Assembly (NCBI GenBank): GCA_029953675.1 | Contig: JAMWBK010000005.1 | Span: forward strand, 372,001-436,000 | Reading direction: 5' to 3' | DNA: 64,000 nucleotides | Origin: Rhodosorus marinus CCMP1338 | Lineage: Eukaryota; Plantae; Rhodophyta | In this document: in pieces, positions 11,121-55,947 of the stretch | Layout of the letters: every line of letters starts with the position of its first letter | Position numbering within the stretch: the stretch's first letter is position 1 | Notes under the pieces: model-generated | Databases searched by the model: none | The model's input: the letters and a program-made list of their open reading frames with translations, nothing else | Told to the model about the DNA's origin: nothing | Program-made: the position numbers and the translations under genes

Positions 11121-13970
11121 ATGGCGCGTCCAAGCGAAAGAATACTAAACGTACTTTCTTCACTAAACACTCAAGAACGTGAGCAGAGGATCTCCAAGGC
11201 GAAGGTGTTAGGTGAAGAATCAACTGCCTACGTTCAGAAGCGGCTGGTTCGTGGTACAGCGTCATCAAATGGTTCCGCGAGAGAGGCGTTCTCCCTGGCT
11301 CTAGTATCTGTTCTCAAGAACGATCCTGAGTCCGTTCAGAGCGTGAAGAGCTTGATTGATGCCGAGTTGATCGGAAAGGGGGGGAGAAGAGAGGAGAGAG
11401 AAGCAACGCTTGGAAGGCTCTTTTGCATCGCCGCTTTCCTGAGGAGTAAAACGCTCGACTCAAGCTCAGAGCTTGTAAAATGGGCTATAGGAGAGCTTTT
11501 CAAAGCCGCAGAGACGGAGCGGGGGCTGAGCGATCTAGCATTGTTCCTGGCTGTTCAGATGCGATTGACTGTGCCGGCCAACGCTGTCGTCGAGAAGCAA
11601 TGTTCAGCGTGGGCAACGAAGAGGGACACAGCGGATGGAGCTGCGATGAAAATTCTGCTTGAGCAAGCGGATCCAGTGGATGTGGGTCCCTCTCTAATGA
11701 CGTGGTTTGACAATGGGTTTATTATGCCAAAAGCACCATATTGCTGGATCCTCTCAGTACAACAAAGCGCACGACGCGGCGCCTTGGACAAATTCTGGCT
11801 CAAAGTGGTTGAAAACCGACTGCTGCGCTCCAGCGCCGCTGAGAAGCGGAAGCTCGGTCTTAGACTTGTGCCTACCGCGCTTGCGCTGGCGAAAACCGCG
11901 ACAAACGTTGAAACCATCCTGACGAAGCGTACCGTCCTGCAACTTGCAAACGCAAAAGTCACCGCTGATGAGGTACGTCGCTCTCCGTCCTCAACAAGCT
12001 AGTAATAACTCGACTCGGCACCAATTAACTCCTTTTGCCTTCTGTTCCTGACATGAAAAAGCTCGTAGCAGCTATAGGGGAAACGGCTCCGAAAGCACTA
12101 CCATCCATTGCGTCAACTTTTGGACGACTAGGTGGATTTGGGGCTGCTCTGGTAGCGGCTGTAGAAAGGATGAACTCGGACGAAGAGGCCGCACTGATTA
12201 GAAGAACGCGCGAATGGGAGCAGGTAAAAGCTGTATCAACCCTGTCGGCAATATGGAAAGCTCGCAAATCGTTTCACGAGGACGTCGCGAAGGAACTGAG
12301 CGCTAGAGATGCGACAACTTCGGTTATCCAGCTGGCTGCGGAGTTCGGACCTTCGACATTGATAGATTTGTACAATCTCCTCTCTGATATGACTGAGATG
12401 AAGTACATCGATTCCGACACGGCTCGTGAGGAGAATGCAAAGAATCTAATTGCCGGTTCTGGCCGGCTTTGTGGAGAGGAGTTAGACGAGAATAATTCTA
12501 TCATGCAGTCTATCGCGGACCTGCTTCAGTTGGAAAGTGCAACAATGCGATCTGTGGCTGTCCTCGCGTTCAATGAGATCATGCGTCAAATTACCTTTGA
12601 GGATCTGCAACCTCTTTTCGAGCTGCTTGATGAGCCGATAAGCGACGACGAAGAAGATGATGCGGAGGAGGAGGAGCTCTCTGAGGATGAGGATGAGGAA
12701 TCGGAGGGTGGCTCCTCCAGTGAAGATGGAGATGAAGCGGAAGGGGATGGGCAAGTCGAGGAGACGAATTCGTTGGAAAGAGTCGAATCGGAGGCGGAAG
12801 AGGAAGAGGAGAACAGATCTATGTCGGACATTGACATGGACGATGAAGACCCGGAAGTGCTTGCAAGATATGATCAAATGCTGGGATCAGTGGTCAAGGA
12901 AGCCACACTTTCTGAGAGGCAGCAGAGAAAACGAGATCTTGAGGCACGAACGCACGTTCGCTCCAAAGCACTTGATCTTCTTGCAAAGTACATCACAGCA
13001 ACAAGGAAGACCAAAAAAGGACTAGAGAACATTCTTCTGCTGATCCCGCTACTTCTGGATGTGTCCATGATGCAAGATAGAACATCAAGCGACAAGGCAG
13101 AAGGTCTTTTGATTAAGAAAGTTCTTCGATCACCCGCCGAGTTTAGTAGCTGCAATTCTGAGCGTGTATTAGAAGTGCTGAAAATGAGCATGGACAAGGT
13201 GCTCCTTCCGGAAGCTCGAAAGGCCGTGCACCAATGTGAGCGTGCGGTATCCTTCCTTTTGACGGTTGCGCTGAGGAGTGGAGTACAGAGAAGTCTAGTC
13301 TCTGCAGAGTTCGAGAGGGGCTGGACTACGTTCGCGAGCGCGCGGAAAGACCTAGGCCTGGGCAGAGAGTTTGGCGAGCTGGTGAGTTCATCAAATCCCA
13401 GCGTGGTCCTGGACTGCTTTGACTCTATACTGGATACTGCGGTGGACGGTAAGACACCATTCGTACAGGGTATCGCCTTGCAAACTCTTGCAGCGACGCT
13501 CAAGTCTGCTCCACGGAATGGTAGGACCTTTGAAAAAAGTGCTTCTTCGCTTAACGATGACAACCCCCGCGAATTCTACTTAATGCGATTCTGCCGTATT
13601 CACCTTTTTTGCAGAAGAAAGCATTTTGGACCCATCCAAATGCACAGCTGCTGAGGAGGCTATTGCGAAAATAGCACGTAAGGACGGGAGCAATTTCAAA
13701 GCTGCACGCGTACGCGATGTTTTGGCCTTATGTAGTGTCCTCACAGAACTGGAATATATGGGGAAGAACGCGAGAGCAATCGGCGATTCGCTTCAAGCAA
13801 TGTCATCGTGGCAAGTGGTTCAAAACAATGGAGGATTGCGGAATATCGTCGAGCAGTTAGAGGAACGGCTTGGGGAGGGCACTGCAGATGGCGACGAAGA
13901 AGAAGGTGCAAGGAAGAGGAAGTCCAAGGCGTCAGGAGCTGGTGACAGAAAATCTCAAAGAAGGAAGTGA
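11121..13970 (+). CDS. MYBBP1A: Myb-binding protein 1A / DNA polymerase phi (Pol5) family nucleolar protein, 3 exons
   Basis: YVQKRLVRGTASSNGSAREAFSLAL matches the family N-terminal motif; helical repeats; central acidic tract followed by MSDIDMDDEDPEVLARYDQMLG; basic C-terminus. Introns at ~11972-12061 and ~13521-13614. Confidence 0.85.
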
Positions 13971-16776: not shown

Positions 16777-19575
16777 ATGGGTAGGGGCGATTTGGGGTTC
16801 TTGGGGTTAAATGCCCCCTTAGTTACACCGATGGGCAGGGGCCATGGATTGTGTGGTTCTTCCAGATCGGACAGAGGAGCAATAACCGCTCCTAGTATGA
16901 GCTATGCGAAGAAGAACAAGAAGAAGAAGAAATTAATGAAGAAGGGCCTCATTAGGAAACCTGAGGATACGAGGCTATTGGATCTACCAGTCCCGGAGGC
17001 GTTGGAAGGCAGCATAGCTATTGTGTGGTTTCGAAAGGATTTGAGGTTGAGGGACAATGAAGCACTAGCTTTGGCGAACACAGCAGATCAGTAAGGGCTC
17101 CAGAAATTTGCCTCAATTTGGGGTGTTCGCTGAGTCGTGGAGCCGCGAAAATGACTGACTTTTTCTGACTTTTTGGTTTATGATCAGCGTCATCCTTCTG
17201 TACGTTTTCGACGAGCGCGAGTTTGGCCCGGACAGCCTCTCCTCATTCGGATTCGAGAAAACCGGACCTTTCCAAGCGGCCTTCCTGATTGAATCTGTTA
17301 AGAATTTAAGGAGAAACTGCCGAATGCGCGGTGTCGAGCTACTAATCAGAACCGGAAAGCCAGAAAAAATCATTACTGACGTAAGCTGCAAACTACGCGT
17401 TGAGAAAAACGCTCTCTCGTAATGCGTCACCAAGCTTACCGACTGTTTCTCGTTGGTGTGTAACAGATGTGTAGAGAGTACCTGAGCAATGGAATGGACG
17501 TCAACGTGTTAGCTCAAAAAGAAGTGACCAAGGTAGCCAAATAGCGAAAGCAACCCAGTATCGTCAGCGATTTGTCTGAATAGCAGGTTTTCATGGTCAT
17601 CAGGAAGAGACAACAGTTGAGTTCCTGCTTCAGAGGTCGTTGAAGAGAATTTCGACTGAAGAAGCTCGGTCAAAGCTTCACCTCCTGTGGGGTTCAACCT
17701 TGCATCACATCCAAGATTTGCCGTACACCGCGTCCAACTTCTTCCCAATCAGTTTCACGACTTTCAAACAGGTAAGTTCGACTCTCTCGTTGATATTGCG
17801 GACTAATGCGTAGCCGAAGAGAAACTTTCTGATATCTTCAACAATATCTAAAATTCTCTTTCGTTGCGTAGAGGGTGGACAGGAAAAAGAGGAAGGGGAT
17901 TGTTCGACCTGAAATCGAGATACCCGAGTTCATAAAACCCCCGCCGGAACCGGAACTGGAGCCTGGAGATGTCCCCTCTCTTAGTCAAGGTATCATTTCC
18001 TGTAACATCTCGGAGCCAAGGCAAGCCGTTCTTACTTGAATGTATATCGGATCGTAGATCTCAAGGTTCATGGGCTCATGGAACCGCTGGAACTGGAGCA
18101 ACCTTTCCCGATGCCTCAATCTTGCTACGATTTCAGAGGTGGTGAAGACCAAGCCCTCGAGAGAATTGACGATTTCATATGGAAGAAGGTTCGACAATGC
18201 TCTCCAGACTAGCCTCCAGAGCATTCACCGCATGAAATTTCGAACTCAGCTGTTGCTTTTTGTGGTTTGCTCGTTTTCTTGCTTTGAAAAGGATGCACTG
18301 TACCAGTACTCGGAGTTGAAAAATTCAATGGGAACAAGCGACTTCTCCACCAAGCTATCTCCGTATCTTGCTCTCGGGTGCGTGTCCGCGAGGACCGTAT
18401 GGTGGGAGGCCATGAGGTATCAGGAAAAACACCCTAGGAAGGTCCAGCAGGGAACCTTCAATCTCGAGGTCAATCTCCAGTGGCGGGACTTTTTCCGGCT
18501 CACCGCCGTTGTGTACAAAAATCAGCTATTTGCCCGTGATGGTCTCGGTCAGCGGGATAAGAAAGGGCGTTTGACCTCGAGAACGTTTGCCAAGAGGGAC
18601 CCCACGGAAGAGCAATGGGATAGGATCAGAAAGTGGATGGACGGCGAAACCGGTGTCCCTTTCATCGATGCTCCCATGCGCGAACTCAAGTATTCCGGCT
18701 ATATGTCAAATCGCTGTCGCCAGAACTGCGCGTCTTATCTCGTGAACGACCTCGGTTGTCCAGACTGGCGTATCGGAGCAGAATACTTTCAGAGCAAATT
18801 GGTTGATCACGATGTCACTTCAAACTGGATGGGATGGCAGTATATTTCTGCAGTGTCAAACGATCCGAAGCACGGGAGAAGGTATCCAGTCCTAAAGCAA
18901 GCCCTGGCGTACGATCCTTACGGAATCTTTGTTAGAAGGTGGTTGCCCGAGCTGGCCTTGTGCCCCGCGCCTGAGATTCACGCTCCGTTTCTGTTCAGCG
19001 AGGAGGAGCAGGAGGCGTACAAGATGAAAGTTGGGGAGACCTACCCAGTCCCGGTCGTTGCGCCCTGGAAAATACCAGAGGAAATTGATCGGCCTAGTGA
19101 AGTTCCGGTTGAGGAGGAGGCGGAGGTTCGAGAGAGAAAGCCCAAGCTGCAGGAGGAAGTTGAAGCCCTTGTAGGTGATATAGATGGTTCCGAAGATCTT
19201 GAGGAAGACGAATCGGAGCGCTTCTTCACCGCGGATTCTGATGAGCATGTGGACTCTGAAGAGGACTTTTTGGCAGAGCTGATGGCATTGGAGGAGGACG
19301 GTACTGAGGATATGGAAGATGATGATGAAGAACTCGAAGAGGTGGAGGGTCTGGGAGACTTGGAAGCGAGCGCTGAGGAGGCTGAGTACGAAGCGGATGA
19401 GGAAGTGGACGTTGATCTTGAAGAAGACGATGACGAGCTGGATTTCGACGATCTTGAAGACAACCTACTAGAGGATGACGAAGATGATCAGAGTGGAAAG
19501 GCGGTTGCAGCTGACGAAGAAAGTCAGGAAGCTGTAGCCGAAGCCGGGGCGAAGGATGTGTCCAAGTTCTGGTAA
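16777..19575 (+). CDS. Cryptochrome DASH-like photolyase-family protein with a predicted organellar transit peptide and an acidic C-terminal tail, 7 exons; start codon uncertain
   Basis: IVWFRKDLRLRDNEAL; FEKTGPFQAAFLIESVKNLR; LWGSTLHHIQDLP; FRGGEDQALERI; STKLSPYLALGCVS; TGVPFIDAPMREL; MSNRCRQ; SNDPKHGR; KQALAYDPYG...RRWLPEL. These are DASH-type motifs. Confidence 0.88.
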
Positions 19576-23480: not shown

Positions 23481-25346
23481 GCTGCCATTAACGACGCTGG
23501 TCCATTCTATTCTTTTGCGGTTGGTTAATCTTGACATGCTTGGCGACGTGTCTACATACTGGTTGGCACCACCCTGATGTTGAGGATGGATTAGTTCATC
23601 AATTAAACTTAGCATTGCTCCTGTACCGCTGACGGATCAGCACGGACAATCCATCCGGATTCCTCGAACCTATGCACGGCTTGCCGGGAGACACTACAAA
23701 CTACGAGTAGAAACATTCCCCCCCTTCCGCACAGATGAAAAGCTTCGGGATCCAGCTTACTAGAATAATCAACTTTGTGTGGACCGCAAATTATCACGAG
23801 CAGGATCCATCTAAATACCACTCCACATCCCACAGTCAGCACTTCCACTATTAACCCTCTGAAACGGGATGGTTCGGCCAATTTCATTACGGTCGAACCA
23901 TATAGCCCAAACCGCAAAAATTAATAATTATAATGATTTTGTATTGAATGAATAAATTGCTCTCTCAAGTGGAAATTGGAGGATATGGATTTCTATCAAA
24001 GTAAATTCAGAACCATGGAATTTCCTTGCCATCAACAGAATTTACTAATTTACATGTCCCTTTTCACGCAAAGCGGTCCACATTTTTAATGAACATTCAA
24101 GCGTCCTCGAAACTCAAAAAAAAATACAAATGCAGAGACTGAGATGCCCTCACTCCCTCCCCCCCAAAACAAAAAATTGGTTTCCTGATTAAAATATTTG
24201 ATGTTTCCTTTGCGGGTGGATGTTCGCGGCCTTCAAGTCCCGTATTTCATAGAAAAAATTAGAACGGATCGAGGTTTTATTGTTTTAAAATAATTTCTGA
24301 ATTGTAAGGGGAAAAACCATGAGTGGCGTCGTATAACTCTTTACCAACGGGAGCAAATTTCTCTGTCTAGAAAGTATTGTACGGACGCTCTCAGCAAAAC
24401 TAGGGAAAAACGATGTGGATTAATACGATAGTTGCATAGAAATTATTAGTTTGAATGGTAGTACATTTTTGGTAAGTAGAAAAAAAAGAAGAGAAAATGA
24501 TAGAGTCTGGGCTAAAACGGCCTAAAAACTATTTTAAAACGCGGTTGGTTTTTGGGTGTTTTTGGAATGCGGAACATTTCCTAGGGGTTGAGTGCGCAAA
24601 CGGGGGAGGAGTGGGGAGGAGTCCTATGGGCTTTCTTTTTTTCTTTTGACGGGGGGGTTGTAAAATTGATTTGGCAAGTGGTAAAGTTTGGTTTTCTTGG
24701 TTGGAAGAATCTAATCTTAGAAATGAAAATATTTCCGAAAGGGGAGGGGGAGGGAGTTGGAAAGTCGGTGTTACTAGTGAACGGAAATAATTAGTCGTGC
24801 ATGAAATTGGATTCTTTTACTATTCGTGAAATATTTTTTTCTAGGGGGAGAGAACCGACCTGATCAATATCTGGTGTTCGATACTGAGGAAGTGGATTCT
24901 AGTTTGCTTACCTATGATGAAGACGGATGACGTCTTAGGGCATGAGGGATCTCTTTGAGTGATTTTTATGATGGGGTTGAAGGTGATTTTGGAGATGTTT
25001 GTTTGAAAGGAAGGGGAAGGGGAAGGGGAAGGGTAGGAGGTATTTCGGGGATTTTTTTTCGTATGGTTATAAATTCTTGGGTTCTTGGAGTTGGGAGGAG
25101 TGGATTTAGGTGTTGACATTGGGCGGGGTGGAGAGGGGTTTGGATGTTTGTTTTGGTTTTTTGAGAGCGCTTAGTTCGGGGCTGTTTGTTTTTTTTTGAC
25201 TCGGTTAGTTGTTAACAAGTGGATGAGAAATAGCAATGAAGTGTTTAGAGTGATAGTGAACGGCTTCGAGGTTGTGAGTTGTGAATAGGGGAGGGTTGGG
25301 GTTTTTGTATTTTTGTGGGTAGGCAGGGTGTTTTGTATTCTTAATT

Positions 25347-27185
25347 ATGGCTGGTGAACCGCGGAGTAAGGAGACTGTCACTTTCGCGGCTGCTCCGTTT
25401 ATCGAGAGCTCGCCGTTGACAAGCTCAAATCATACTACTACGGGAAACACTAATGTGGATGATAGTGAAAAACTGAGCAGACTTCTCGACGTTCCATTGT
25501 CGTCCAGAAGTATTTTCTTGAACGATGAAACGAATGCGGATGACAATCTGAGGGCAGAACTCGAGGAAGCGGCTTCGAGAAATGAGGTCAGAAAAAAGAG
25601 GCGCAGGGGAAGGTTGGGAAAGTTTTTAAGTGCGTGCCGAATGAATTTGTTTGACTGCTTCATGGTTCCAGACGAGCTGCCAGAGGTGGGGAAGCTTTCG
25701 TTCAAGACAAAGGTCCAGTTCGTGCTGCAGTCTAGGGGTGTCTTTTGGTTCACTTTGTTCGTGTTGGTTTTAAACATTCTGATTTTCTCCTGGGAGTTCA
25801 ACCAACAAGAGTGGGAAGGGCTGCAGACAACAATCTTAACATTACAGTTGATCTTTAACACTCTCTTCGCAACTGAAATCGGGCTAAGAATTTGGGTATC
25901 CGGAGTGAAGAACTATTTCCGCAACGCCTGGCATTTAATTGACTTCCTTCTGGTCGCCGTGGCTTTAATATCGGTGTTGTTTTGCTCAATTATTGTATTC
26001 GCGCACATCCTAAAGGGCAGCGAATTTTACATATGTAACTTTCGGCATTTGATTATTCTCCGGTTGATCCCTGTCGTTCAACGTTTATCTGAAGATGATC
26101 TCCAGTTACGAGTGGAACATGATGCTTCTCAACTGGATGTACATGGGCTGACAATTGCGTCACACGAGCTCCGAAAAGGGAGGAAGCTCGGCGCGGGGGC
26201 CTTCGCGGAGGTGTATTTAGGTCTTTACTCGGGCACGCTCGTTGCCGTGAAGGTTCTTCATGATACAGAGACGGAGAATTCTGAAGCTTTTCACCGAGAG
26301 GTTAACATTCTGACCCTGCTTAGGCATCCCAATATTGTGCTTTTCATGGGTGTAGTGGATGAAGCTGACAAGCTCTGGTTCATAACGGAGTACTGTGCCA
26401 AGGGATCTCTAAACTCACTTCTTGGGGACGAAGCTCTGTTCCCGTCGGGTGCAATAACGCAACTTACCTTGCAATTAGCAGTCGACATTTGCAGGGGTAT
26501 GGCTTACCTTCATGGGCACAAGAGGCCGATTCTGCATCGCGACTTGAAAACAGCAAATGTTCTCGTGTCAATGTCACTAGAAGCGAAGGTGTCTGATTTC
26601 GGAGAAAGTGTAATTCGCTTGAACGTGAAGAAATCGTCGCCGATAGTGGGGACAGTACAGTACACCGCTCCAGAGGTTTTGAGGGCAGAAGAGTATGCAG
26701 CACCAGCCGATATTTATTCTCTTGGGGTAGTTTTATGGGAAATGGCTTCGAAAGAGCTTCCATATCGAAACAAAAATCTGGTTCATGTCGGCTACTCTGT
26801 TGGCTTTGAAGGATTGCGACCGGATATGATCGCCTTCCCGAAAGCCTATTTACCGGAGACGAATTCCTTCAAGGGAGGTGACCATTCCATGTTCACTAGA
26901 GCCGAGCTATCCGAGAGGAGATCATCAGACGTAATTCGTAGATATAGGGAGCTTGTGGAGCGCTGCTGGGATGAGGAGCCGGAGCTCAGACCCTCCGCAT
27001 CGGCATGTCTCTCGGAGCTGGAGAGCATTCGCAGTTTAGCAGGATGTAGCGTTATGTCTATTGAGGATTTGGAGGACCAATCCGCGGAACCAATGAAGAC
27101 TGAGACTGGCGAGCAATTCCTGCCCAGCGGGGTGGACTTCTTCCCGACGTCGAGAGCAGACTCAGATTCGAGATTAGATGTGTGA
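25347..27185 (+). CDS. Voltage-sensor-like domain (S1-S4, no pore) fused to a TKL/Raf-like protein kinase; single exon, 612 aa
   Basis: Four TM helices: FVLVLNILIFSWE (S1), LFATEIGLRIW (S2, F-x-x-E-x-x-x-R), YFRNAWHLIDFLLV (S3, conserved Asp), FRHLIILRLIPVVQRL (S4). Then kinase motifs LGAGAFAEV, VAVK, REVNIL, HRDLKTANVLV, DFG, GTVQYTAPE, DIYSLGVVLWEM, RCW...RPS. Confidence 0.9.
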   Translation: MAGEPRSKETVTFAAAPFIESSPLTSSNHTTTGNTNVDDSEKLSRLLDVPLSSRSIFLNDETNADDNLRAELEEAASRNEVRKKRRRGRLGKFLSACRMNLFDCFMVPDELPEVGKLSFKTKVQFVLQSRGVFWFTLFVLVLNILIFSWEFNQQEWEGLQTTILTLQLIFNTLFATEIGLRIWVSGVKNYFRNAWHLIDFLLVAVALISVLFCSIIVFAHILKGSEFYICNFRHLIILRLIPVVQRLSEDDLQLRVEHDASQLDVHGLTIASHELRKGRKLGAGAFAEVYLGLYSGTLVAVKVLHDTETENSEAFHREVNILTLLRHPNIVLFMGVVDEADKLWFITEYCAKGSLNSLLGDEALFPSGAITQLTLQLAVDICRGMAYLHGHKRPILHRDLKTANVLVSMSLEAKVSDFGESVIRLNVKKSSPIVGTVQYTAPEVLRAEEYAAPADIYSLGVVLWEMASKELPYRNKNLVHVGYSVGFEGLRPDMIAFPKAYLPETNSFKGGDHSMFTRAELSERRSSDVIRRYRELVERCWDEEPELRPSASACLSELESIRSLAGCSVMSIEDLEDQSAEPMKTETGEQFLPSGVDFFPTSRADSDSRLDV

Positions 27186-27575
27186 GCCTCGAGTACTTCA
27201 CGTTAAAGAGACGATGAGGAAAGAACTTGTAGGGTGGCACAAGAATGCCGCAGTGGAGTAGGCGAGAGGGAGTAGATTTCACGGGGGTTTGCAGCTTCTT
27301 GTATTATGAGTACATTCATAGCAGATATATAACTTTGTATACTATTAAACGGGCACGTATCTATGCGATTCCGAGATGGTGAAGTTCTGGTTGGATAATT
27401 CGAATGGACTACTTGTGCACATGAAGTTGTCGAGGAGATCTGGTCCTTGCAAGCGGTTGCCTCTGTTAATGCGAGAAAGCCCTTCGATCCCACTCATCTG
27501 GTGGATACTTGCACGCCTACACAATTGAGGGCGGGTTTCCCTTCGTGTGTTTGCGCCAAGTGAGCATGTCATGTC

Positions 27576-30500
27576 CTACCATCGACGGCGCTTGGCGGGT
27601 GACGTGGTTCTGGGCTTGGGTTCATTCTCCGCCGTTGAAGATGCCATTTTGGAGTCGACATCGCTACCATCAGTGCTCAGCTCGATTTCACTTCGCTTTC
27701 GCCCAATCGAACCCTCCTCATCATCGGATCGCTGCTCTTGGACTACTTGCTTAGAGGCTTCGGAGCCAGTGGAATGCCCCGCGTTGTCATCTGGGATCAA
27801 TGAGAGCTGGCCGAACCCGTAAAATAGAGGAAGCGAGTTGATATCCACATCAGTCTCCCTCTGAGCATCCATGTCCCGTGCCATCATCTTGTTCAGAACC
27901 TCCTCAATCCCGAGGAGGCGCTTCCAGTCAGCAGCGTTTCTTAAAGGCCCAACGGGAACTTGACTCAAGCGGAGCTGAAGAGCAGATTTAACGGTGCTGG
28001 CTCTTTCGTAATGCAGTTTTTGCACAAGGGGAGGAAGCGCTGCTGATAGAAATTTGAGCATCTTGCGATCCGGGGCCGTGTTCATGTTGTATCTTAGGAG
28101 AGCACAGGTTAAGGAGGCCACCGCTGACGTGTCCTTCCAGAACGGATATCTGGCAGTAGGACATTTCAAACAACTCGGCTCAGCTCGAAGAAAATTGACT
28201 GTAGCCAGGGCTTCAATTAGCATTTGGAGATCCTATGAACTGACCTCATAGCCAGAGAGCGAGAAAGGCTAGCCACCATATTCGCGCTTTCGATGTCCTT
28301 CCCGCCCAAAAAAATTAGAGCCCCTAGCTCAAATTCCCATGCGACACTCTGATCCCTGCTACGATTTTTTTCAGCTTACCATTGCTGGTAGTTAACTGTG
28401 CAGAGTAAAAGCAACCGTACCTATCTCTCAGCCGTTGATGGTACTCCCTCGCGAGAAAGAACAGTTCCTGGTCCCTGGAACCCTTTTTAGCGAGCATGGT
28501 CAGTGGCAGGTGAGCAACTCTTTCGGGCAGTCCACCCAAGAGGCAAGCTTGGCATATCGAAGCGAGGCATCGAATCCTCCAATCCTCGAATCCTAATCAT
28601 GAAATTCGCTGCCAGCTTAGATTAGAAAACGTACGCGATGGATCGATATGCTGAAGCTCACGACTTGTACCTTTGGGTTCAACCGCTTCTGACAATCCCA
28701 CTAGGTCCCCGAAGAGAGCACCAACGGTCTCTGAGAGGGCGTGCTCTTCAGCCTGAGCCGCGACGTCCGCGTTTGGAGGGAGCGTGCCAGGGCGACTTTC
28801 TCTTCTGCATTGAGCAGCTAGAATGTCGCAAGCAGATTGAACAGATGCCGCTCTTACTCGAAAGACAGAGTCGTCAGTTGCCAGTCTAGAAAGTCTCGAC
28901 AGGATTTCAGAGGACGAAGCATCCCTTGCCTATGCAAATCAAACGGATGGTAGAATATCATAGTCAACATTTGACAAGGTCAGTCGTGCTCGATGCAAGG
29001 TGTTTTCCCCGCGTACCTTTTGGATGTCAGATTTCCAGGCCCAGTTCAGAAAGTTCAGCTCAATTGCGGGAATCGCAACATTGCCTTCTTCCAACAACTC
29101 AGCTTCCTTCAAGCGATCGTCCAACAAGTCCACGAGGAGGCCACCAAGCTCGCCTACAGGAGCGACAAACCGTGCAAGCACTCCGAAGTTGACCAATCGC
29201 CAGGAGAACTACCACCAAAAAAAAGTTTCTGGATAAGTTCAGAGATACGAGCTCCTCAGGAATGACGAATCCTACCTCATCCTTTTCGCCCAGTCCAGTC
29301 GAGTACGCTCTGTTGAGGTCGGCCTCCGATTCTGAAACCAAGGTTTTCAGCTTCGACCTACATTCCGATACAAATCCGTGCTCGGAATCGGCCAAACTGG
29401 CCCACGTACTATAGACAGCCTCAGAGAATCTCAGATTGCTCGAACTCGACGCACGCTTCCAGTATTCCGCAAGGAAACGCAGCGTGAGATTGAACTCCCG
29501 CTCAAGAAGTGACGATCGGAATACACCGGCGCCAACATGCTGCGATAGTAGCACTACCAGAGTCAGAAGATGCTCATCTCCTTGAAACTTCTCCAGCAAT
29601 AGTGGTAGCTGGGCGGCCAACACGGCAAGGTTGAAAGCAACATTGTTGACTTTCTCCTGGAATTGGGGATTGACCAAAAAAAGTAAATAGTTCACATCTA
29701 TAAGGAAAACTTTTAGGTACAGTGTGTGTGTGATACCTTTGAAGCCGCTGATTGACAGACCACGGCGATGAGTATCATGAGCAGATATTGGGTTTCGGAC
29801 GAATTGAGAGGAGAATCCGGCGAGTCGGTGAGTAGTTCCACGAAAGCCTCAGTGATTCGCAGAGCTGGTAGCTGTTCTCCGATGCTCTTCGCGAACGGCA
29901 TGATCGTCCTCAGCGTAGACGTCGTGGAACGGATCGGTTTGAGTTTATGCAGCATTTTTACGAGCTCAACGATCTCTTTCACTGCGAGATCGTGATCTGG
30001 CACTGTAAGAAGCAAGGACGAGTCAGAACGATGGCACATTTTCGACTACTTGTCAGGGACTTCCGGGATGCTATCGTGATGGCTCAACCTGTTCTCGTCG
30101 ATCTCCTGGGTTTAGTATCGGATCTGATCTGCTTGACAAGCTTCGTCGTTGAAATGGACGGATTATCGTTCCCTCTGATAGTCTCGTATAGCCGCACGGA
30201 TGGACTCAGCCGGCGTTGAACTTCGTCGGAGACCTTGTGCGGTCATCACGGGTTCGAGCGGGTCACAAGAATCAGGAAGATGAAGCTGGGTTGGCGTTTT
30301 CCGCGAGGTTAGGATTAGCGCACGTACTACAGAAGTTGCAGCCTCTCTGATCTTGGGGGAGGTGTCGCGCATGGAGAGGTCGAAGAAGAGCTTGACGTCT
30401 CGCTGCTCATGCAACCCATAATCGAAGATCAGGGCGGATAGCTTTATGGCTAGTACTGCAACAGTGTCGTTCGGATCACGGCAAGCCTCACGGAGTCTCA

Positions 30501-31784
30501 CCCTGAACCGCCTGAGAAGCATCTCCACGTTGGCTACCGGCCCCTGCCATTGCGAAACGAAACGTTAACAAGCAAGTACCCGCTGGCCCCTACTAGCAAC
30601 ATTCAACGTACTAGCGCCTGTAAAATTCTGTCAAGAGCCCGCAGGGCAGAGCACCTGACTGTAGAGTCTTTGTCAAACAGAAGCCATCCAATGTGCTTTA
30701 TGTAGTCTTCGTCCATAAAGCTCTCGGGAGCCGCCTCAATCCATCTGGTGAAGCAAGAAGAGTATTTTCGAATTCATGGACCCGCCCCTCGAATCTACCT
30801 CTTCACACTAGGCGCTCTACGTACCTGGACAGTGCGGTTATCGACAAGGCGCGAATGTCCGGAAAACAATCTCGACTCCTATGGACGAACACTTCCGCGA
30901 AGGTCCTGTCCGAAGTTGCCGCAACCTTGTCCGCCGCGGAAGCCGCAGACTCGAGGGTTCCCTCAATAGAGCCAAGTTTTTCCGATGACCGGCGCCTGCG
31001 AGTAGAGGTCTCCTCTCCTATTTTCTGCTCTAGAGCATTCAGATCGTGCTTAAGCGATCGGTGAAACTGTAGAGGGGGAGGTGGCGATTCAGCGACTAGT
31101 CAGGTGATTCCGCTGAAGGCGTCTCCAACCTCGAGTAAACCATCCATCATGCAGTAGACCGTTAAGCATGAGATGAAGCGGAGTGACCTGGACCCCGACT
31201 CCGATAGCGATATGAGGAACTCCAGCAAATTTTCGAATAGCTCCGACTTGATCAAGTCATCTGGAGGATAGTTAGTAATAAAACGGCGCCAAAACTCCTC
31301 GTAGGCTGCCTGGAACTTTCTTGATTCTGCATCGCTTCCGAAAACCAGGATGTTGCTCCCCACGTCGGATTTTCCTGAACACACCGTGCTTTCGTTTAAG
31401 CCGTTGTCCTGCTTGTCATTCTCGAACTAGTGTGTCGAGACGACCTACCCATGAATTCGGTGAAATCGTTTGCGACACAATCTGCTTGAAGATCGTCAAC
31501 CTTTTTCATGTCCAATTGGAACAGTGATTCTTGGATAGTGTTTGAGTACGAGCTCCTCGTCACCAGTTCCAGCAAATGATACATTTGAAGAGGGGCACCG
31601 TCCTTGCATCTACGAACGCACAATCAGTAAACCTGAGGAGCACGCTACAGAAACAGGAAACTTTATTTTGGCACTGGTGCAGAGCTTACTTTAAGATGAA
31701 TCCCCTCAATGTTGATCCAATACTACTAGCATGATCTCTCAGCACATAGTACAAACCGCCATCATCCCCTGGCGCGACACTCAT
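27576..31784 (-). CDS. SCC3: Cohesin subunit SCC3/STAG (stromalin), multi-exon, divergent
   Basis: STAG domain YEEFWRRFI...LFENLLEFLISLSESGSRSLRFISCL; SCD motif FVHRSRDCFPDIRALSITAL; RLREACRDPNDTVAVLAI; LSMRDTSPKIREAA; C-terminal basic PAKRRRW. First exon MSVAPGDDGGLYYVL starts at 31784. Internal exon boundaries only partly resolved. Confidence 0.85.
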
Positions 31785-31971
31785 TCTAAACGCTCAAAGC
31801 TCTTCAGATGAAGAAACGACCTATCGTCTGCACCTAGGGTGGACAAGTTGGATGTCTCTCTTCTTTCACTCCTCTGCTTCCTTTACCAACTCTCCTTTCA
31901 ACCAGAAAAGTTCTGCGCACTCTCCCGCCCTTTAAAGCCCAATCGGTGCAGCGTCCATCATCATTGTAGCG

Positions 31972-32225
31972 TTCACTCATCAGAGCGGTCACCCATCACA
32001 GTGGTCAACCATCAACGTAAGCACCCATCACAGTAGTCACCCATCAGAGTGGTCACCCATCAGAGTGTTCACCCATCAGTGGTCACCCATCAGAGTGGTC
32101 ACCCATCAGAGTGGTCACCCATCAGAGTGGTCACCCATCAGAGTGGTCACCCATCAGAGTGGTCACCCATCAGAGTGGTCACCCATCAGAGTGGTCACCC
32201 ATCAGAGTGGTTAACATTAGAGTTG
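31972..32225. repeat. 16-bp tandem minisatellite (GTCACCCATCAGAGTG), about 16 units
   Basis: Eight consecutive perfect copies at 32082-32209, with degenerate copies on both sides and one 14-bp unit. Confidence 0.97.
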
Positions 32226-32240
32226 GTCATCCGTCCGGGT

Positions 32241-32700
32241 GGTCATCCGTCAATGTGATCATCCGTCAAAACGTTCGTCAAACTGTCACATGTCAAGGTG
32301 TCACAGGTCAAAATGTCACCCATCAGAGCGCTACCCATCAAAATGGGTCATCCGTCAATGTGGTCAGCCGTCAAAACGTTAGGCAAACTGCCACATGTCA
32401 AGGTGTCGCACGTCAAGATGTCACCCATCAGAGCGCTACCCATCAAAAAGGGTCATCCATCAAGGTGCCCCAAGTGACCCCGTCAGCCATCAAAATTTGT
32501 CCCTGATCAAAGTGTCCCAAGCCAGGGCGTCCAAGCTCATTGTCGATCTGTCACATCTGAATTTGCCACCCGTTCAAATCTTCACCCTTCAAGAATTGTC
32601 GCACGTCAGAAATGAGACGGGTCAGGGAGTCAACCGTCATCGTTCATTTTACATCGCTCGTCACCTGTCATCAGTTTGTGATCAAGAATGCATGTGCTTA
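32241..32700. repeat. Degenerate ~15-bp-period array with a 105-bp (7 x 15) higher-order duplication
   Basis: GGTCATCC(G/A)TCAA begins at 32241, 32346 and 32451 (105-bp spacing); monomers share a GTCA.CC.TCA core that fades out toward 32700. Confidence 0.85.
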
Positions 32701-40186: not shown

Positions 40187-41737
40187 ATGGCGCGAGGTGG
40201 GAATTCGTTTTTGAGGAGGAACGAACCGAGATCCGCAGGAGGAAAACGTCTCGTATGGATGTTGCTTGTGATCGTGACTTCGTTTTTGATGCTCAGCTTC
40301 AGGCGATTGGCTGGTGGTTCTGATTTCCAGCCCGGGTCGAGCAGGGTTACCGTAGAGAACGACATTAACAAGGTGCTAGGACTAATTGATAGCAAACAGG
40401 ATGAGCTGATCAAATGGCTCAGCGATGCTGTAAGAATCCAGTCGGTTTCAGTCGGAGAAATGCGGAATAACAGCGGACTAGACTCCGCTCGAGAATTCTA
40501 TATCAACCTCGCCAAACGAGTAGGATTAGATGAAATCAAAGTTGCGGGATCTAACCCCGGCACTGTTCTTGCAAAACGTCGAGGACAAGCTTCAAAATCA
40601 GTTCTCGTTTACGTACATTGGGATGTTCAACCAGCTGCGAATGGACAAGGAGGTTGGGACCACGATCCATTCGATGCACAAGTCCAGGGAGACAGACTGT
40701 TCGGACGTGGTGTTTCTGACGATAAGGCTGCTGCAATAGGATGGTTGTGGGTACTTGAACAGTTTAACAAGGCTGGTGTTCCACTGTCCGTTGATATACG
40801 GATCATGGCTGAGGGTGAAGAGGAGATTGGATCTCCGCAGTTGAAGCAGGTTGTGGATATGGAGAGTTTAGAGGGTGGATTTCTGTCTGGTGTGAAGTAT
40901 ATGATGGTGAGTGATGGATCCTTTGTGTCTGATCGACCTTGCGTCGTGCAAGGAACCAGAGGAGTTGTACATTTTTATGTATCAGTGTCTGGAGCGTCGC
41001 GAGATTTGCATTCCGGGACATTTGGAGGTGGAGTTTACGAGCCTTTGAGCGAGATGTCGATGTTGATGACTTCGCTATCGGATGGTAAGGGCACCGTGAT
41101 GGTTGAAGGTTTCAACGAAATAAAGTATCCTCGAATAGACCGGGAGGAATTGAAGCAATTCGGACTTGACGTATCGGCATGGGAAAGACAGGCTGGAACT
41201 GAAAAAGCAACAACTCGAGTGCCTGAGGCGCTCCTCGAGCGCGTGTGGGGATCGCCATCGGTATCTGTTCACGGGATTCGCTCATCAGCTGACTTTGAAG
41301 CGGCTGCGATTTCTGGCAACGCCAATGCACACTTCTCCATTCGCATCCCCGCTGGTATGAATCCTGATGAAGTCGCGGAGGCTACCGTACGACATCTCAC
41401 ATCCAAATTCGAAGCATTCAAGACCCCAAACAAACTCGAAATTAACGTAGCCCAAAAGGCGCCAGGCTTTTCCGTCCAGGCCGGATCACAGCTCCACGCA
41501 GCCATCAGCCGGGCAGTAAAGCGCGCTAGGAACGTCGGACCTGAAAACGCTAGACTTGGTGGAGCGATTCCCGTGGCTGCATTCCTTTCGACCGCAAATC
41601 CAGAATCGGAGGTGCTCGTGCTCCCAATCGGAGGAAGAGCAGATAACGCACACGGACATGAAAGTATCTCCAGGCAAGATCTGCATTACGGAACCAGGAC
41701 CTTTGCGTTAATACTGGACGAACTCTCTCGCTTGTAG
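40187..41737 (+). CDS. Peptidase M20A family dipeptidase (CNDP/Dug1-like) with an N-terminal signal anchor; single exon
   Basis: YVHWDVQP, GRGVSDDK, EGEEEIGS, SDG, RDLHSGTFGG, GGAIP, DNAHG: all metal ligands and the catalytic Glu are present. TM segment RLVWMLLVIVTSFLMLSFRR. Confidence 0.9.
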   Translation: MARGGNSFLRRNEPRSAGGKRLVWMLLVIVTSFLMLSFRRLAGGSDFQPGSSRVTVENDINKVLGLIDSKQDELIKWLSDAVRIQSVSVGEMRNNSGLDSAREFYINLAKRVGLDEIKVAGSNPGTVLAKRRGQASKSVLVYVHWDVQPAANGQGGWDHDPFDAQVQGDRLFGRGVSDDKAAAIGWLWVLEQFNKAGVPLSVDIRIMAEGEEEIGSPQLKQVVDMESLEGGFLSGVKYMMVSDGSFVSDRPCVVQGTRGVVHFYVSVSGASRDLHSGTFGGGVYEPLSEMSMLMTSLSDGKGTVMVEGFNEIKYPRIDREELKQFGLDVSAWERQAGTEKATTRVPEALLERVWGSPSVSVHGIRSSADFEAAAISGNANAHFSIRIPAGMNPDEVAEATVRHLTSKFEAFKTPNKLEINVAQKAPGFSVQAGSQLHAAISRAVKRARNVGPENARLGGAIPVAAFLSTANPESEVLVLPIGGRADNAHGHESISRQDLHYGTRTFALILDELSRL

Positions 41738-42155: not shown

Positions 42156-44734
42156 TCACGTGGATGGAACTTTGTTGTCTTCCGCGGCGACCTTTTCGAT
42201 TTCGGGCTTTTCAGGATCGACCCTTAATGATTCAAGGAATTGGATTCCCACCTGTGGCGGTTGCGTTGCACCCTCCCCAGCTGGCATGACCTGGAGAAGA
42301 ATCGGCTTTGAATACAGGTCGGTCTCCGCTCTCGGAGCGAGGTGGACAAATTCTGCTTGTTCGTGGACGTAACCGAAAATAGAACCAAGCTCCACCACGT
42401 TCTGCCGGTCGCTCGTTTCCACGTGCTGAGAGAGCTTCTTCTCCAGTACTTCCTTGGTCAGAACGCCCGTTTGCATCTGCCGTACGTATTCGGCGGAGAC
42501 GGTTGGGGATTTTACGCTCTCAAAGAACTTCATAATCGCGTTGGCAACGTCAGGGATGTACCGCTTCAGGTTCCGACTGCGATCTTGCCTGCTCTTCAGT
42601 TCAGCCCTCCGAGCAAGCTTGGTCTTCAGTTGAGCGCAGCACGATTGAATGGCCTTTCGGACTGATTGTTTAATTGTTAGCGAATCATCGCCGATGTACT
42701 CCTTGCCGGTTCCTTTGAAGGGGATCTTTGTGCTGACTATCGAGCAGAACACTCCGATCCGATCCGTGTTAGCAGAAATCTTGTACTGCCCCCAGGGTAT
42801 GTCCTGAGCTGTCTTCGTCACGATGTCGTTCCCTTGCTCGAAAAGCAGCGGGATTCGATTCGCGAATCGATAGATACTAAGGCCATTTCGCACATTGTCC
42901 CCACCCAGCGAGACTCCCGCTTCGACAATAAACGGGTGGCCTTCAAAGGCATCAGCGGACTCTGCGTGCGTAGCCACCATGTCCGGGCGTAGCTCCTTCA
43001 TAATTCCCAACCGCAGGTTGTACTCTCCAGCAGGAGAAAGGCATTCTCCCTTTGGCTTTCCGAATCTTGCCTCTTTCAGGAGCTTGTCTAAGATTCTGAT
43101 CTCGTTTAGCCCGAGCTCGCTAATGGGCATGGTCGGTGAAAACGTTTCACCCAGTTCCTTGATAAGTCGCTCCGCAAGTGGCTTATCGATGTTGCTCAGT
43201 TCCCGAGTCAGAAACCGCACGAGGGGGGTCTTCCCCGGAATATTAGAGATGAGCTGCTTGAGGAGAAGCTGGTTGATTGAGGCTGGATGATGCTTGACTT
43301 CTTCCGGTTCCGGAGGCATCTGGTCAGATCTCCTCGAAAATGTTACTTCAAACGACTTTTCTGCTCTGCAAGTGCAGATTCGACAGGCAGGTGGCACAAG
43401 CCCCCGACAAGTAAGCCAAATTGACAGAAGGATGAACGGCTGAATTGTGAGGAGGGACTCGCACGGCTGCACTGTGACTTACCGCGGAGAATGAAACTTG
43501 AAGTTAAACTGTGCGTATGGTGTGATAACAGCCATTTGACGCATGTATTGCAAAATTTTTGCTCGATACGTTGTCCAGCTTCCTTGAATCGTCACCTTGA
43601 TTTCCGTGCCTCTCCAGTTGTTCTCGTTCGGCAGCTATATTCTCACACAAAGTTGAAGCCGGATTAGAGGACGTGCGCAGAAGTCAGTCGGAGACTCTTG
43701 CCTATCTGCAGACCCCTTTCGCGACCGCAACATACCTTCTCATGCACAATGACGTTCGGAATATTCTTGGAAATATCGATATCCAAAACGCAGTGGGTAA
43801 TTTCGCAACCAGCCTTCGCAGTGCGGATATCTACTGGCAAAGAAGTGCTCATCTTACTCCAGATCAGGGCCATCTTCGATCCGAGACCGAACTTTCCTCG
43901 CGACTGTTTCACGCAGTATTTTGTCCCTTAGTGTTTGTGAGGACGGACAAGAGCCAAGGTGGTCGTATATACCATGCTGTGAGAATACATAAGAAGATAC
44001 GGAGCAAGGCTCCACAGTGAATATGACAGTCAATCGTCTATACCTGCAAGCACTCGACCGAGCATATCTGGGACGTCGTCGTGAGCCATTCCGATTCCGT
44101 TGTCGCTGACGAATACTCTGAGCGTGCTCACGTCACCTCGTGAACCTTTTTGAGTTGCCTGTGATGGCTGAGAGGGTTGCTCAGAGGGCGGGGGTTGTGA
44201 AGGTAATTCCGCTGGTTGCGAGCTCATTTGCGAAGCCGAAGCTTGAGTCTCTTCCATCAAAGAATCCGGCTGAGTTTGACTTTCGGCTTTCACCTGCATG
44301 TTTGCGTCCGTATCTTCTGGTGGATTTGTTTTCTGCTTCTTTGCCTCCTGGTGGTTTTCAGAGGGTTGGTTCTTTTTCCTTTTCGCTTCGCGTTTTTCTT
44401 TAGCCTCTCGTTTCTTTCTCTCCTTGCCTGTCTCAACGTCCTTGTAAAGAGTCTCATCAAGTCGCTCCCGGTCATTGATTCCCACCATCTTGTTAAATTC
44501 GGAAATCGACAGCTCGTCGACAACCACATCAATCATAGGGAGCACCGGAACGCTTTCCGCCGCGTCCAAACCATTCTCCACCAGTTCCCTGATCGTGGTA
44601 TACAGAGATTTCCCAGGATTGTCGAACCCAGCGATGTTCTTATTCTCCGCAAAGAACTCCGCCGGAGAGCGGAATCTCAACTTTGGCCCTCCATCATCAG
44701 CTTCCGCAGCTGGCTTGGCAGATTTTCTTACCAT
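42156..44734 (-). CDS. TOP6B: DNA topoisomerase VI subunit B, multi-exon
   Basis: SPAEFFAENKNIAGFDNPGKSLYTTIRELVENGLDA, DNGIGM, G|TKYCVKQSRGKFGLGSKMAL, KHHPASIN, LSPAGEYNLRLG, RFANRIPLLFE, KIPFKGTGKEYIG. Confidence 0.96.
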
Positions 44735-54600: not shown

Positions 54601-55947
54601 CATTCCGCCTGGGTTTAAGATCAGCATCTGGTTGGAGATGTCGACTCGCGCTTGATAGTTGCGTAGGAAGTCTTGTCCCAAGTATGCCGGGCTCGCCGCT
54701 TCTTCTACGATATAGGGCTGCCACTCAAAGTAGTGATCACTTAGCTGTAAGGTTACGTTCACTTCGCCCAAAATCTCAATTGATGCTCCTGGGGCAGCGG
54801 TGTCCAATCGCCTATGTTGAGTTGGGACTATTGGAGTGGCGTCTGGGATGCCACGCAGGACGGAATGGCTACTTCCGGTATCGATCAGGAGGGCCTGCTT
54901 CTTCCCATTCAAGAACCCTGTGACCGTGAAGTTTGCACTGAAGGGAACCCGAACGCCTTTGTCAGCAACAGTGTCGGCGCTTCCTACTGCTGCTCCTCGT
55001 TTAACTCCTGTGTTTTAGGGGGTGCCGATTTCGAAAAAGTCGGATCCCGGTCTGGGTTGTCCCAGCATATCCATTGGGTATGCCCCTTTTTCCCGCAAAA
55101 ATAATTACAGATAACGTTGGCATAGCTGCGCCTTTTCATCTCCTGGTTGGTCGGTTGGTACGGGCGTCCGGAACGGGTTCCTCGGCTCACGAGGGGAAGA
55201 GGCGTCACGGATTTCACAGCTTCTGTTTTCCGCTGACTTGAACCTTGATGGTTTCTCATTCCCGATGTGCAGCTAGCCATCTCAGCGCCTTCGATTTTTA
55301 GAGCAAGGGCCTGCGCCGCTTCATAGGTCTGCACGTCTTAGATATATATGTATGCAAGATGTGCAGACCTGAAGCGGAGCAGGATATATATGTATTTCTT
55401 GATGTCCGGTTTGTTGCCTTCGACGAATCTATCAAATTTCTCGGAGTCCGAGATTTCTCCAACCTGGATCAGGCATTTTATTGAATTTTGCCGAATATGC
55501 CGCATGTACAGGCGTTTTCTGTTCTGCCTGTGCGAGTTGCTGTTTCGCACGGATCTTAGCGTCCGCTGGGTAGAACTGGGCTTTAAGCGTATTCTCGAAA
55601 CCTGCATATGTCGACAGTCTCTGGCTGTCGGGAAGTAGTGACCACCAATAGGAAGCGTCACCAGTGAGATAACCCTCGGCCAGGGTAAGCTTATATTCAT
55701 CGTCATCTTCGGGTAGTCGCGCTAATTTAAAATATGCTCGTAAGCTGTTTAGGAACCTGCTAATCAGCAATGCATCCCTGCGTCCGTCGTAAGCCTTCGG
55801 TTGCGGGGCCTGGATATTAATGAGTGACGACATTCTAACTCTGGTTCCTAGGTCTCAGGTTTTCAGGTTTTCCAGGTTCTTCAGGTTTTTTGAGGTTCTG
55901 GGCTCATTCGTGTTCCTCAATCGCAAAACTCATGCGGATGAGTTTTG

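Follow-up and report, generated by a model that had tools for sequence, protein, structure and literature searches.

An S1–S4 voltage-sensor homologue joined to a TKL protein kinase in the red alga Rhodosorus marinus: a candidate family of voltage-regulated kinases

Outputs of voltage sensing that do not depend on a pore are, to our knowledge, few, and comprise the voltage-sensing phosphatases (VSPs), the sperm Na/H exchanger SLC9C1 and candidate sensor-cyclases. In VSPs (Ci-VSP, TPTE/TPTE2), an N-terminal pore-less S1–S4 block is connected through a short post-S4 linker to a cytosolic enzyme on one chain. The same arrangement was found for the predicted product of a gene of Rhodosorus marinus CCMP1338, located at 25347..27185 on the plus strand of a 64,000-nucleotide stretch (contig JAMWBK010000005.1, assembly GCA_029953675.1, positions 372,001 to 436,000; the whole stretch is hereafter called the window). 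Unlike VSP, which carries a PTEN-like lipid phosphatase and a C2 domain, this protein carries a tyrosine kinase-like (TKL) protein kinase, and its only C-terminal domain in Pfam was Pkinase / PK_Tyr_Ser-Thr. We refer to it as a VSD-kinase, VSD standing for voltage-sensor domain.

Fusions of an Ion_trans-type sensor with a cyclase have been described in protists, i.e. in Phytophthora (PPTG_13136/13761), Paramecium and Plasmodium (PMC12223298; PMC10651576). These sensor-cyclases of oomycetes, ciliates and apicomplexans resemble the VSD-kinase in joining such a sensor to a signalling enzyme, but their enzyme is a class III cyclase and not a protein kinase, and the ciliate and apicomplexan forms retain a K-channel pore. 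The channel-kinases TRPM6 and TRPM7 likewise unite an ion-channel-type membrane module and a kinase in one polypeptide; theirs is, however, a full TRP pore with an atypical alpha-kinase, whereas the window protein has a pore-less sensor with a conventional kinase, and neither a TRP nor an alpha-kinase domain was matched in its Pfam scan. No report of a VSD-protein kinase was found in full-text literature searches, the nearest being the Phytophthora VSD-cyclase, and the word 'kinase' is absent from a review of 2023 in which, according to its caption, Figure 1 covers all VSD proteins reported until then (PMC10651576). The first-pass annotation of this locus had known of no characterised protein with the architecture, and in agreement with this we found no paper describing it; the protein is, however, not unique, as about 20 members were detected in databases. 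Their sequences are already public under automatic Pfam labels, as kinases that are either unnamed or called 'hypothetical'. The apparent novelty lies in the recognition of a conserved family, together with any study of its role.

The gene and the two halves of its product

The reading frame of the VSD-kinase starts with ATG and encodes 612 amino acids (aa) followed by a stop codon. It is a single open reading frame (ORF), uninterrupted through 25347..27185 (+) as first annotated, and an in-frame stop is located 8 codons 5′ of the ATG. The 90% identity cluster of the window protein included a 611-aa product of an MMETSP transcript and a 617-aa JGI product, each 93% identical to it. The sister-strain contig encoding the 611-aa product, L001, was aligned with window positions 25310-28357 as one gapless block; across the convergent cohesin gene, it was without seven window segments of 58-90 nucleotides (nt) each, six of which show a clear GT start and AG end on the minus strand. 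Since these GT-AG segments are missing from it, L001 represents spliced cDNA, and therefore the VSD-kinase ORF is intronless and both halves are carried on one mRNA. The expected single transcript for the two halves was thus found in the sister strain, where L001 spans the whole ORF without a gap. The complete intronless coding sequence at 25347..27185 was assigned from the ORF itself, from this gapless colinearity and from the ratio of nonsynonymous to synonymous substitution rates (dN/dS) of 0.13 between the two strains. The same ratio was 0.13 for the N-terminal region, 0.22 for the transmembrane (TM) block and 0.10 for the kinase. The linker between S4 and the kinase is the stretch best conserved between strains, with 0 nonsynonymous and 4 synonymous changes. 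All parts of the gene are under purifying selection. No second copy of the VSD-kinase was found within the 64-kb window.

It is highly improbable that the fusion is an artefact in which an adjacent small VSD gene and a kinase gene read through into each other in the assembly. Such an artefact might be seen in P0003, a 389-aa sister-strain MMETSP protein that corresponds to window positions from about 26090 to 27185. Its first 23 residues (MCPPIILFRAFSIPRRLFQSAVFRT) are unrelated, and it matches the window protein from the linker onward. P0003 could stem from a kinase-only transcript, as an isoform with an alternative start, or else from a chimeric assembly. Against a read-through artefact stand the uninterrupted ORF, its 611-aa counterpart on the spliced cDNA contig of the sister strain, the recurrence of the layout on independent contigs, in about 20 proteins of three or more red-algal classes, and the conservation of the linker.

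The order of parts along the plus strand is as follows. The cytosolic N-terminal region (aa 1-118; 25347..25700) is of low complexity and was modelled by AlphaFold with a predicted local distance difference test score (pLDDT) of <50; it includes a basic cluster, RKKRRRGR (aa 82-89), and a KLSxxLDVP motif which, in the alignment, is common to the relative P0005. A short pre-S1 helix, S0 (aa 119-127; 25701..25727), was seen in the AlphaFold model and is followed by Ser129, which is invariant in the 18-sequence family alignment. S1 (aa 130-151; 25734..25799), also delimited with AlphaFold, carries N143 where most relatives carry Asp. S2 (aa 157-185; 25815..25901) was placed by alignment with repeat II of Cav2.2 and has Q167 at the neutral outer counter-charge position; its charge-transfer-centre motif consists of F174, E177 and R181, each at least 90% conserved in the 18-sequence alignment. 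S3 (aa 194-223; 25926..26015) carries the motif N-A-W195-H-L-I-D199-F of the Cav/Nav S3 type, and S4 (aa 230-247, CNFRHLIILRLIPVVQRL; 26034..26087) has R233, I236 and R239 at the positions corresponding to R1, R2 and R3. The S4-kinase linker (aa 248-273; 26088..26165) is an acidic helical extension of S4 with pLDDT 52-55. In the AlphaFold model S4 forms one continuous helix, 233-265, prolonged beyond the membrane, and strand beta1 of the kinase starts at 275, about 9 residues on. The TKL Ser/Thr kinase domain of the CTR1/Raf/MLK-like type (aa 274-558; 26166..27020) was assigned by Pfam, by phmmer against the PDB, by Foldseek and by its motif table, and includes a variable insert at approximately aa 495-530. 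The acidic C-terminal tail (aa 559-612 plus stop; 27021..27185) is predicted to be disordered, with pLDDT <50 from residue 568, and is not present in P0005 in the alignment. Because the TM helices number four, the N- and C-terminal ends are both cytosolic. The first description of four TM helices, a short linker and an intact kinase on one chain was confirmed by Pfam and AlphaFold.

The TM block was matched by Pfam Ion_trans at aa 134-248 (E 4.5e-12; 46 bits against a curated cut-off of 25 bits), and of the 241 profile positions the match covers 6-113, which correspond to S1-S4 alone. No TM-like segment corresponding to a pore (S5-P-loop-S6) was found past residue 250, where the only hydrophobic stretch is a buried kinase strand. 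As the Ion_trans match ends at position 113 and no membrane-like segment follows S4, the protein has no S5-P-S6 pore; the kinase already begins at residue 274. The pore-less nature claimed for the protein was therefore upheld, as were the motifs F174-x-x-E177-x-x-x-R181 of S2 and W195-x-x-x-D199 of S3, both found in place. The Pfam scan proposed in the first-pass annotation returned the anticipated partial Ion_trans match together with Pkinase and PK_Tyr_Ser-Thr.

An exhaustive HMMER search of the 176-aa TM block against 1.84 billion representative proteins gave one close relative, P0005 (E 1.5e-36). All non-family matches of this search that were checked with Pfam, the short ones included, were Ion_trans channels, and nearly all of the 150 matches listed were 1,200-2,900 aa in length with 3-4 matched stretches, like four-repeat Cav/Nav channels. 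Against the PDB, the sequence of the block matched VSD-II/IV of Cav2.2 (E 1.3e-16), the isolated crystallised sensor of Ci-VSP (E 3.5e-9), and in addition T- and L-type Cav and Nav channels. Chance is excluded as an explanation of this similarity at the level of sequence. The closest sequence relatives of the block are repeats II and IV of Cav/Nav channels and NavAb, so that in sequence the window sensor is nearer to Cav/Nav repeats than to VSP. Common to both are S2 F-x-x-E-x-x-x-K/R, S2-S3 G-x-x-x-Y-F-R and S3 W-N/H-x-x-D-F, and in the alignment with Cav2.2 residues F174, E177 and D199 fall on the equivalents of the charge-transfer centre. Unlike Cav/Nav channels, the window protein is without an S4-S5 linker, an S5-P-S6 pore and repeats, and S4 leads into the kinase.

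Structure prediction pointed to the same fold. The full-length AlphaFold model had pLDDT 59 and a predicted template modelling score (pTM) of 0.46, with residues 120-250 at 70-83, and a model of the TM block alone had pLDDT 79 and pTM 0.69. Since Foldseek with the full-length model returned kinases only, the sensor-only model was needed. With it, the best 50 matches in the PDB were all voltage sensors (TMq 0.51-0.64), among them NavAb, NavMs, CavAb, VSD4 of Nav1.7 (0.64), Cav1.1, Cav1.2, Cav2.2 and Ci-VSP 4g7v (TM-score 0.58/0.67). The modelled block thus adopts a VSD fold, and Ci-VSP, with which the annotation had proposed a comparison, is among the matches. By sequence and predicted fold, the TM block is an S1-S4 voltage-sensor homologue.

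The C-terminal half was matched by Pfam Pkinase at aa 277-556 (E 4.3e-52). All catalytic motifs listed in the first description were present, i.e. VAVK at 299-302 with K302, the alphaC Glu E318, HRDLKTAN at 397-404, DFG at 417-419 and APE at 441-443, and the catalytic residues are invariant in the family alignment. The glycine loop reads GAGAFA, with Ala in place of the third Gly. The closest solved kinase by sequence was Arabidopsis CTR1 (phmmer against the PDB, E 1.7e-45, 32-33% identity), followed by CSK, MLK/DLK, B/C-Raf and TNNI3K; Foldseek with the full-length model returned CTR1, Raf, MLK1, DLK and RIPK2, and plant CTR1-type kinases filled the match list of the profile search. From HRDLKxxN, the enzyme is classified as a TKL kinase of the Ser/Thr type, and by its motifs the C-terminal half is a catalytically complete TKL kinase. 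CTR1/Raf/MLK kinases act at membranes and are activated through dimers. These closest solved kinase domains, however, belong to proteins without a TM domain of their own, which are recruited by ethylene receptors, Ras or lipidation.

Relatives and origin of the family

About 20 proteins share the VSD-kinase layout, and all named members, from Pyropia, Gracilariopsis and Galdieria, belong to red algae. The closest is P0005, a protein of 586 aa that is 53% identical to the window protein and has the same layout. A profile search of 5.8 billion proteins brought to light further members, among which those with a species name were P0160 of Pyropia yezoensis, P0177 of Gracilariopsis chorda, and P0172, P0175, P0174 and P0193 of Galdieria (G. 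sulphuraria, G. partita and G. phlegrea); further relatives are on contigs (P0166, P0167, P0169, P0170, P0173, P0176, P0178, P0184 and P0273). On its contig, each of P0005 and P0273 is encoded by a single ORF. Contigs of genomic, metagenomic and transcript origin, independent of one another, carry the layout in no fewer than three classes of red algae, and the features of the family are an S0-S4 block with the invariant Ser ahead of S1, a helical linker and a TKL kinase.

The sensor identity of the TM block was also seen with profiles of the other two clades, built without the window sequence. The profile of the long-linker clade matched Cav3.3 (3.9e-18), the human VSP TPTE2 over its whole domain (5.9e-12), Hv1 (6.8e-12 and 3.4e-6) and Ci-VSP (1.9e-6), and that of the Galdieria clade matched Cav1 (4.8e-9) and TPTE2 (1.1e-4). 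Comparison of the TM blocks of the three clades by hhalign gave E-values of 4e-6 to 3.5e-5. As each clade is about equally similar to Cav sensors, this result shows homology but does not suffice to demonstrate one origin, and the kinase tree was therefore used for the latter question. In a FastTree tree of 78 kinase domains, with oomycete, amoebozoan, ciliate, green-algal and plant CTR1-type kinases as outgroups, all VSD-kinases formed one clade with support of 0.975. Galdieria branched first, and the window clade was sister to the Pyropia/Gracilariopsis clade; an interim IQ-TREE tree had the same topology. The place of the window clade in the tree would suit a red alga that belongs to none of the Bangiophyceae, Florideophyceae and Cyanidiophyceae. 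Monophyly of the kinase domains, with a branching like that of red-algal phylogeny, indicates on sequence grounds that the family arose from one ancient fusion.

Two observations were made on the searches. The oomycete proteins P0155-P0158 and P0161 outscored the red-algal proteins and were ruled out, since they are tandem double kinases whose multi-TM N-terminus is unrelated. In a word-index search, the TM block of the window protein retrieved itself only and that of P0169 retrieved five close relatives only, the index being too coarse for so divergent a block; profile and exhaustive searches were therefore needed.

The kinase half varies within the family. HLDLK is found instead of HRDLK (non-RD) in P0160, P0166, P0170, P0177 and P0184 of the Pyropia/Gracilariopsis subclade. 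In this subclade, the variable insert, placed after the catalytic core and before the last helices, extends to several hundred residues, and the kinase matches are split. In the window protein, the insert is short and the kinase is of the RD type.

S4 charges and possible coupling to the kinase

In the every-third register of S4, only R233 and R239 are positively charged, R246 being off register. In alignment with S4 of Cav2.2 repeat II, R1 is represented by R233 and R3 by R239, with I236 at R2, P242 at K4 and Q245 at K5. The description of S4 as Arg-bearing thus stood for R233 and R239, but S4 is weaker than was implied, since R2 is replaced by Ile and R246 lies off register. Judged from its sequence, the window copy retains R1, R3 and the inner charge-transfer centre only.

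Relatives have 3-5 in-register Arg in S4, the highest number being five in P0170 (RWLRITRFIRLIR), and several of them retain three to five together with all four acidic counter-charge positions. In the site table of all 18 members, F174, E177, R181, D199 and R239 were kept except in P0005, with substitution of F174 by Tyr in P0160 and of D199 by Glu in three members; R239 (R3) is invariant throughout the family. P0005 has Gln at the position of E177, Thr at that of R181 and Val at R2, and keeps the S1 Asp. Where both the S1 Asp and the outer-S2 Asp are present, R2 is Arg and R1 is either Arg or His. The residues N143, Q167 and I236 are neutral in the close cluster of the window protein, and the equivalent positions are neutral in Galdieria as well, where R1 and R2 are both Gln. 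The outer acidic residues and the outer S4 Arg were thus jointly present or jointly absent in nearly all of the 18 members. As the outer partners were lost in pairs, as would be expected of a real electrostatic network, this pattern argues that the ancestral domain functioned as a sensor. In one subclade, S4 R1 is His (H-x-x-R-x-x-R), as seen in P0169, P0173, P0176 and P0178 and, by inspection, in P0273. Shaker with His at the R1 position forms a proton pore, and by analogy the members of this subclade might conduct or sense protons.

From these features we propose that the sensor would be a regulatory input to the kinase rather than a mere anchor. S4 would shift relative to the conserved F174/E177/D199 charge-transfer centre, driven by membrane potential or by another stimulus that displaces the equilibrium of the sensor, such as pH or lipid state. 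The shift would be relayed via a rigid S4-linker helix to the kinase and would change its position, dimerisation or autoinhibition at the membrane, and hence its activity. This coupling is modelled on the S4-phosphatase link of Ci-VSP and on the dimer-dependent activation of Raf/CTR1/MLK. For the lineage of the window protein, we hold the proposal that S4 movement alters kinase activity to be only a little short of an even prospect. The prospect is better for relatives with three or more in-register Arg. Voltage control of the kinase, put forward in the first-pass annotation together with pH and mechanical state as a candidate input to phosphorylation, is plausible, but less certain for the window copy than for these relatives. 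As far as sequence can tell, true voltage control would be expected first of all of the ancestral form and of those from Pyropia and Gracilariopsis, in which S4 has R-x-x-R-x-x-R and the acidic counter-charges number four. A low number of charges does not preclude a response to voltage, but makes it weak. With R1, R3 and the inner centre retained, the window protein would be expected to have a voltage dependence that is smaller or shifted. More tentatively, the family as a whole could be a voltage-regulated kinase, the kinase counterpart of VSP, with a single origin in early red algae through the capture of a sensor of the Cav/Nav type. S4 would then switch the kinase directly, and neither an ion flux nor a second messenger would be involved; the window protein, as a variant with few charges, would be tuned to another voltage range or stimulus.

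Several points weigh against sensor control of the kinase. The window S4 has two in-register Arg as opposed to four in VSP, and the counter-charge positions in S1 (Asn) and outer S2 (Gln) are neutral. P0005, the closest relative, is without E177 (Gln) and R181 (Thr) and falls below the Pfam threshold for Ion_trans (E 0.001), so that decay of the sensor in the window clade is possible. The linker of VSP, directly after S4, is a basic phosphoinositide-binding motif. Unlike this basic, membrane-binding coupling linker of Ci-VSP, the window linker (RLSEDDLQLRVEHD) is acidic; the long-linker clade has a basic stretch, KVRERALKWRAR, in its linker. Foldseek E-values of the sensor, at 2e-3 to 7e-2, were modest, which is common for helical bundles of small size. 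The linker and the placement of the domains were poorly predicted (pLDDT 52-55 at 250-270; pTM 0.46 for the full model), and the alignment underlying the AlphaFold models consisted of 18 sequences only. P0003, the possible kinase-only variant described above, belongs with these points.

The TM block may instead be a fossil of a voltage sensor, which serves as a membrane anchor and perhaps as a dimeriser while the kinase, independent of voltage, is regulated by phosphorylation, by partners or by the N-terminal region. We regard this as the main alternative and a substantial one, albeit one that we would not ourselves favour on balance. The charge loss of the window clade (R2 to Ile, S1 Asp to Asn, outer S2 Asp to Gln), the additional absence of E177 and R181 from P0005, and the Gln at R1 and R2 of the Galdieria members agree with it, as does the dN/dS of the TM block, which is higher than that of the kinase (0.22 and 0.10). 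VSD-like domains of little voltage sensitivity are moreover familiar from TRP channels and from one repeat of TPC. A plain anchor, however, would not need F174, E177, R181, D199 and R239, which are near-invariant from Galdieria to Pyropia; nor is the joint loss of outer charges required of an anchor. The S4-linker is unchanged between strains, and the long-linker clade retains three to five S4 Arg with all four acidic counter-charges, both of which speak against a fossil.

Conduction by the sensor itself was also considered. A proton or gating-pore (omega) current through S1-S4 would make the protein a channel-enzyme, with the kinase modulating or reporting the conductance. Gating-pore currents usually arise in sensors missing one or more S4 charges (PMC10651576), and the Ile at R2 of the window S4 is in keeping with this, as are the subclade with His at R1 and the extension of S4 into a cytosolic helix as in Hv1. 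With Hv1, the window protein also shares a sensor without a separate pore. It differs from Hv1, however, in the absence of the signature RxWRxxR/K (PMC10377628), as its S4 reads FRHLIILRL without the Trp motif, in N143 at the position where Hv1 requires an S1 Asp, and in its 285-aa kinase in place of the short coiled coil. Red algae, in addition, reportedly possess separate Hv channels (PMC10377628). We therefore judge conduction to be an improbable explanation.

If regulation of the kinase by the sensor is true, the sensor-kinase would constitute a new output class of voltage sensing, in which the electrical state is converted directly to protein phosphorylation, and an undescribed signalling route in red algae. 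The family could then serve as a natural scaffold on which kinases under voltage control are built for research, and, with five to one S4 charges, as a graded natural series for studying the loss or the retuning of voltage dependence in sensors. As the family is small, conserved and single-exon, cloning and electrophysiology should be straightforward, and the question is directly testable.

Neighbouring genes in the window

Downstream of the VSD-kinase, a convergent gene for a cohesin subunit (STAG / SCC3, HEAT_SCC3-SA) is located at approximately 27576-32400 on the minus strand and has at least seven introns of 58-90 nt. Because this gene and its VSD-kinase neighbour are joined in L001, the 3′ ends of the two overlap or nearly abut. 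On the other side, the stretch 24001-26000, mainly the 5′ flank at 25000-25346, is AT-rich for the window (GC 0.42) with a very strong G-over-C skew of +0.31. The flank consists in part of (GGAAGGG)n-like repeats and long T runs, and its composition may be a promoter or 5′ untranslated region feature.

An unrelated protein kinase gene was found at 5873-8450 on the minus strand; by tblastn, the kinase domain of the VSD-kinase matched it with 25% identity at 7902-8444. A 631-aa ORF at 5873-7768 (-) opens with the last kinase subdomains, and the gene is probably multi-exon and not a paralogue of the VSD-kinase. Other genes of the window encode DNA polymerase phi (Myb-binding protein 1A-like; 11121-13654, +, over two ORFs), a photolyase/cryptochrome FAD-binding protein (18070-19575, +), an M20 peptidase (40187-41737, +) and topoisomerase VI subunit B (42156-43472, -); no functional link between these four neighbours and the VSD-kinase was evident. 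Overlapping ORFs at 52553-54912 on the minus strand encode reverse transcriptase, RNase H and an integrase zinc-binding domain, and represent the pol region of a retrotransposon of the Ty3/gypsy type with an apparent frameshift between reverse transcriptase and RNase H-integrase.

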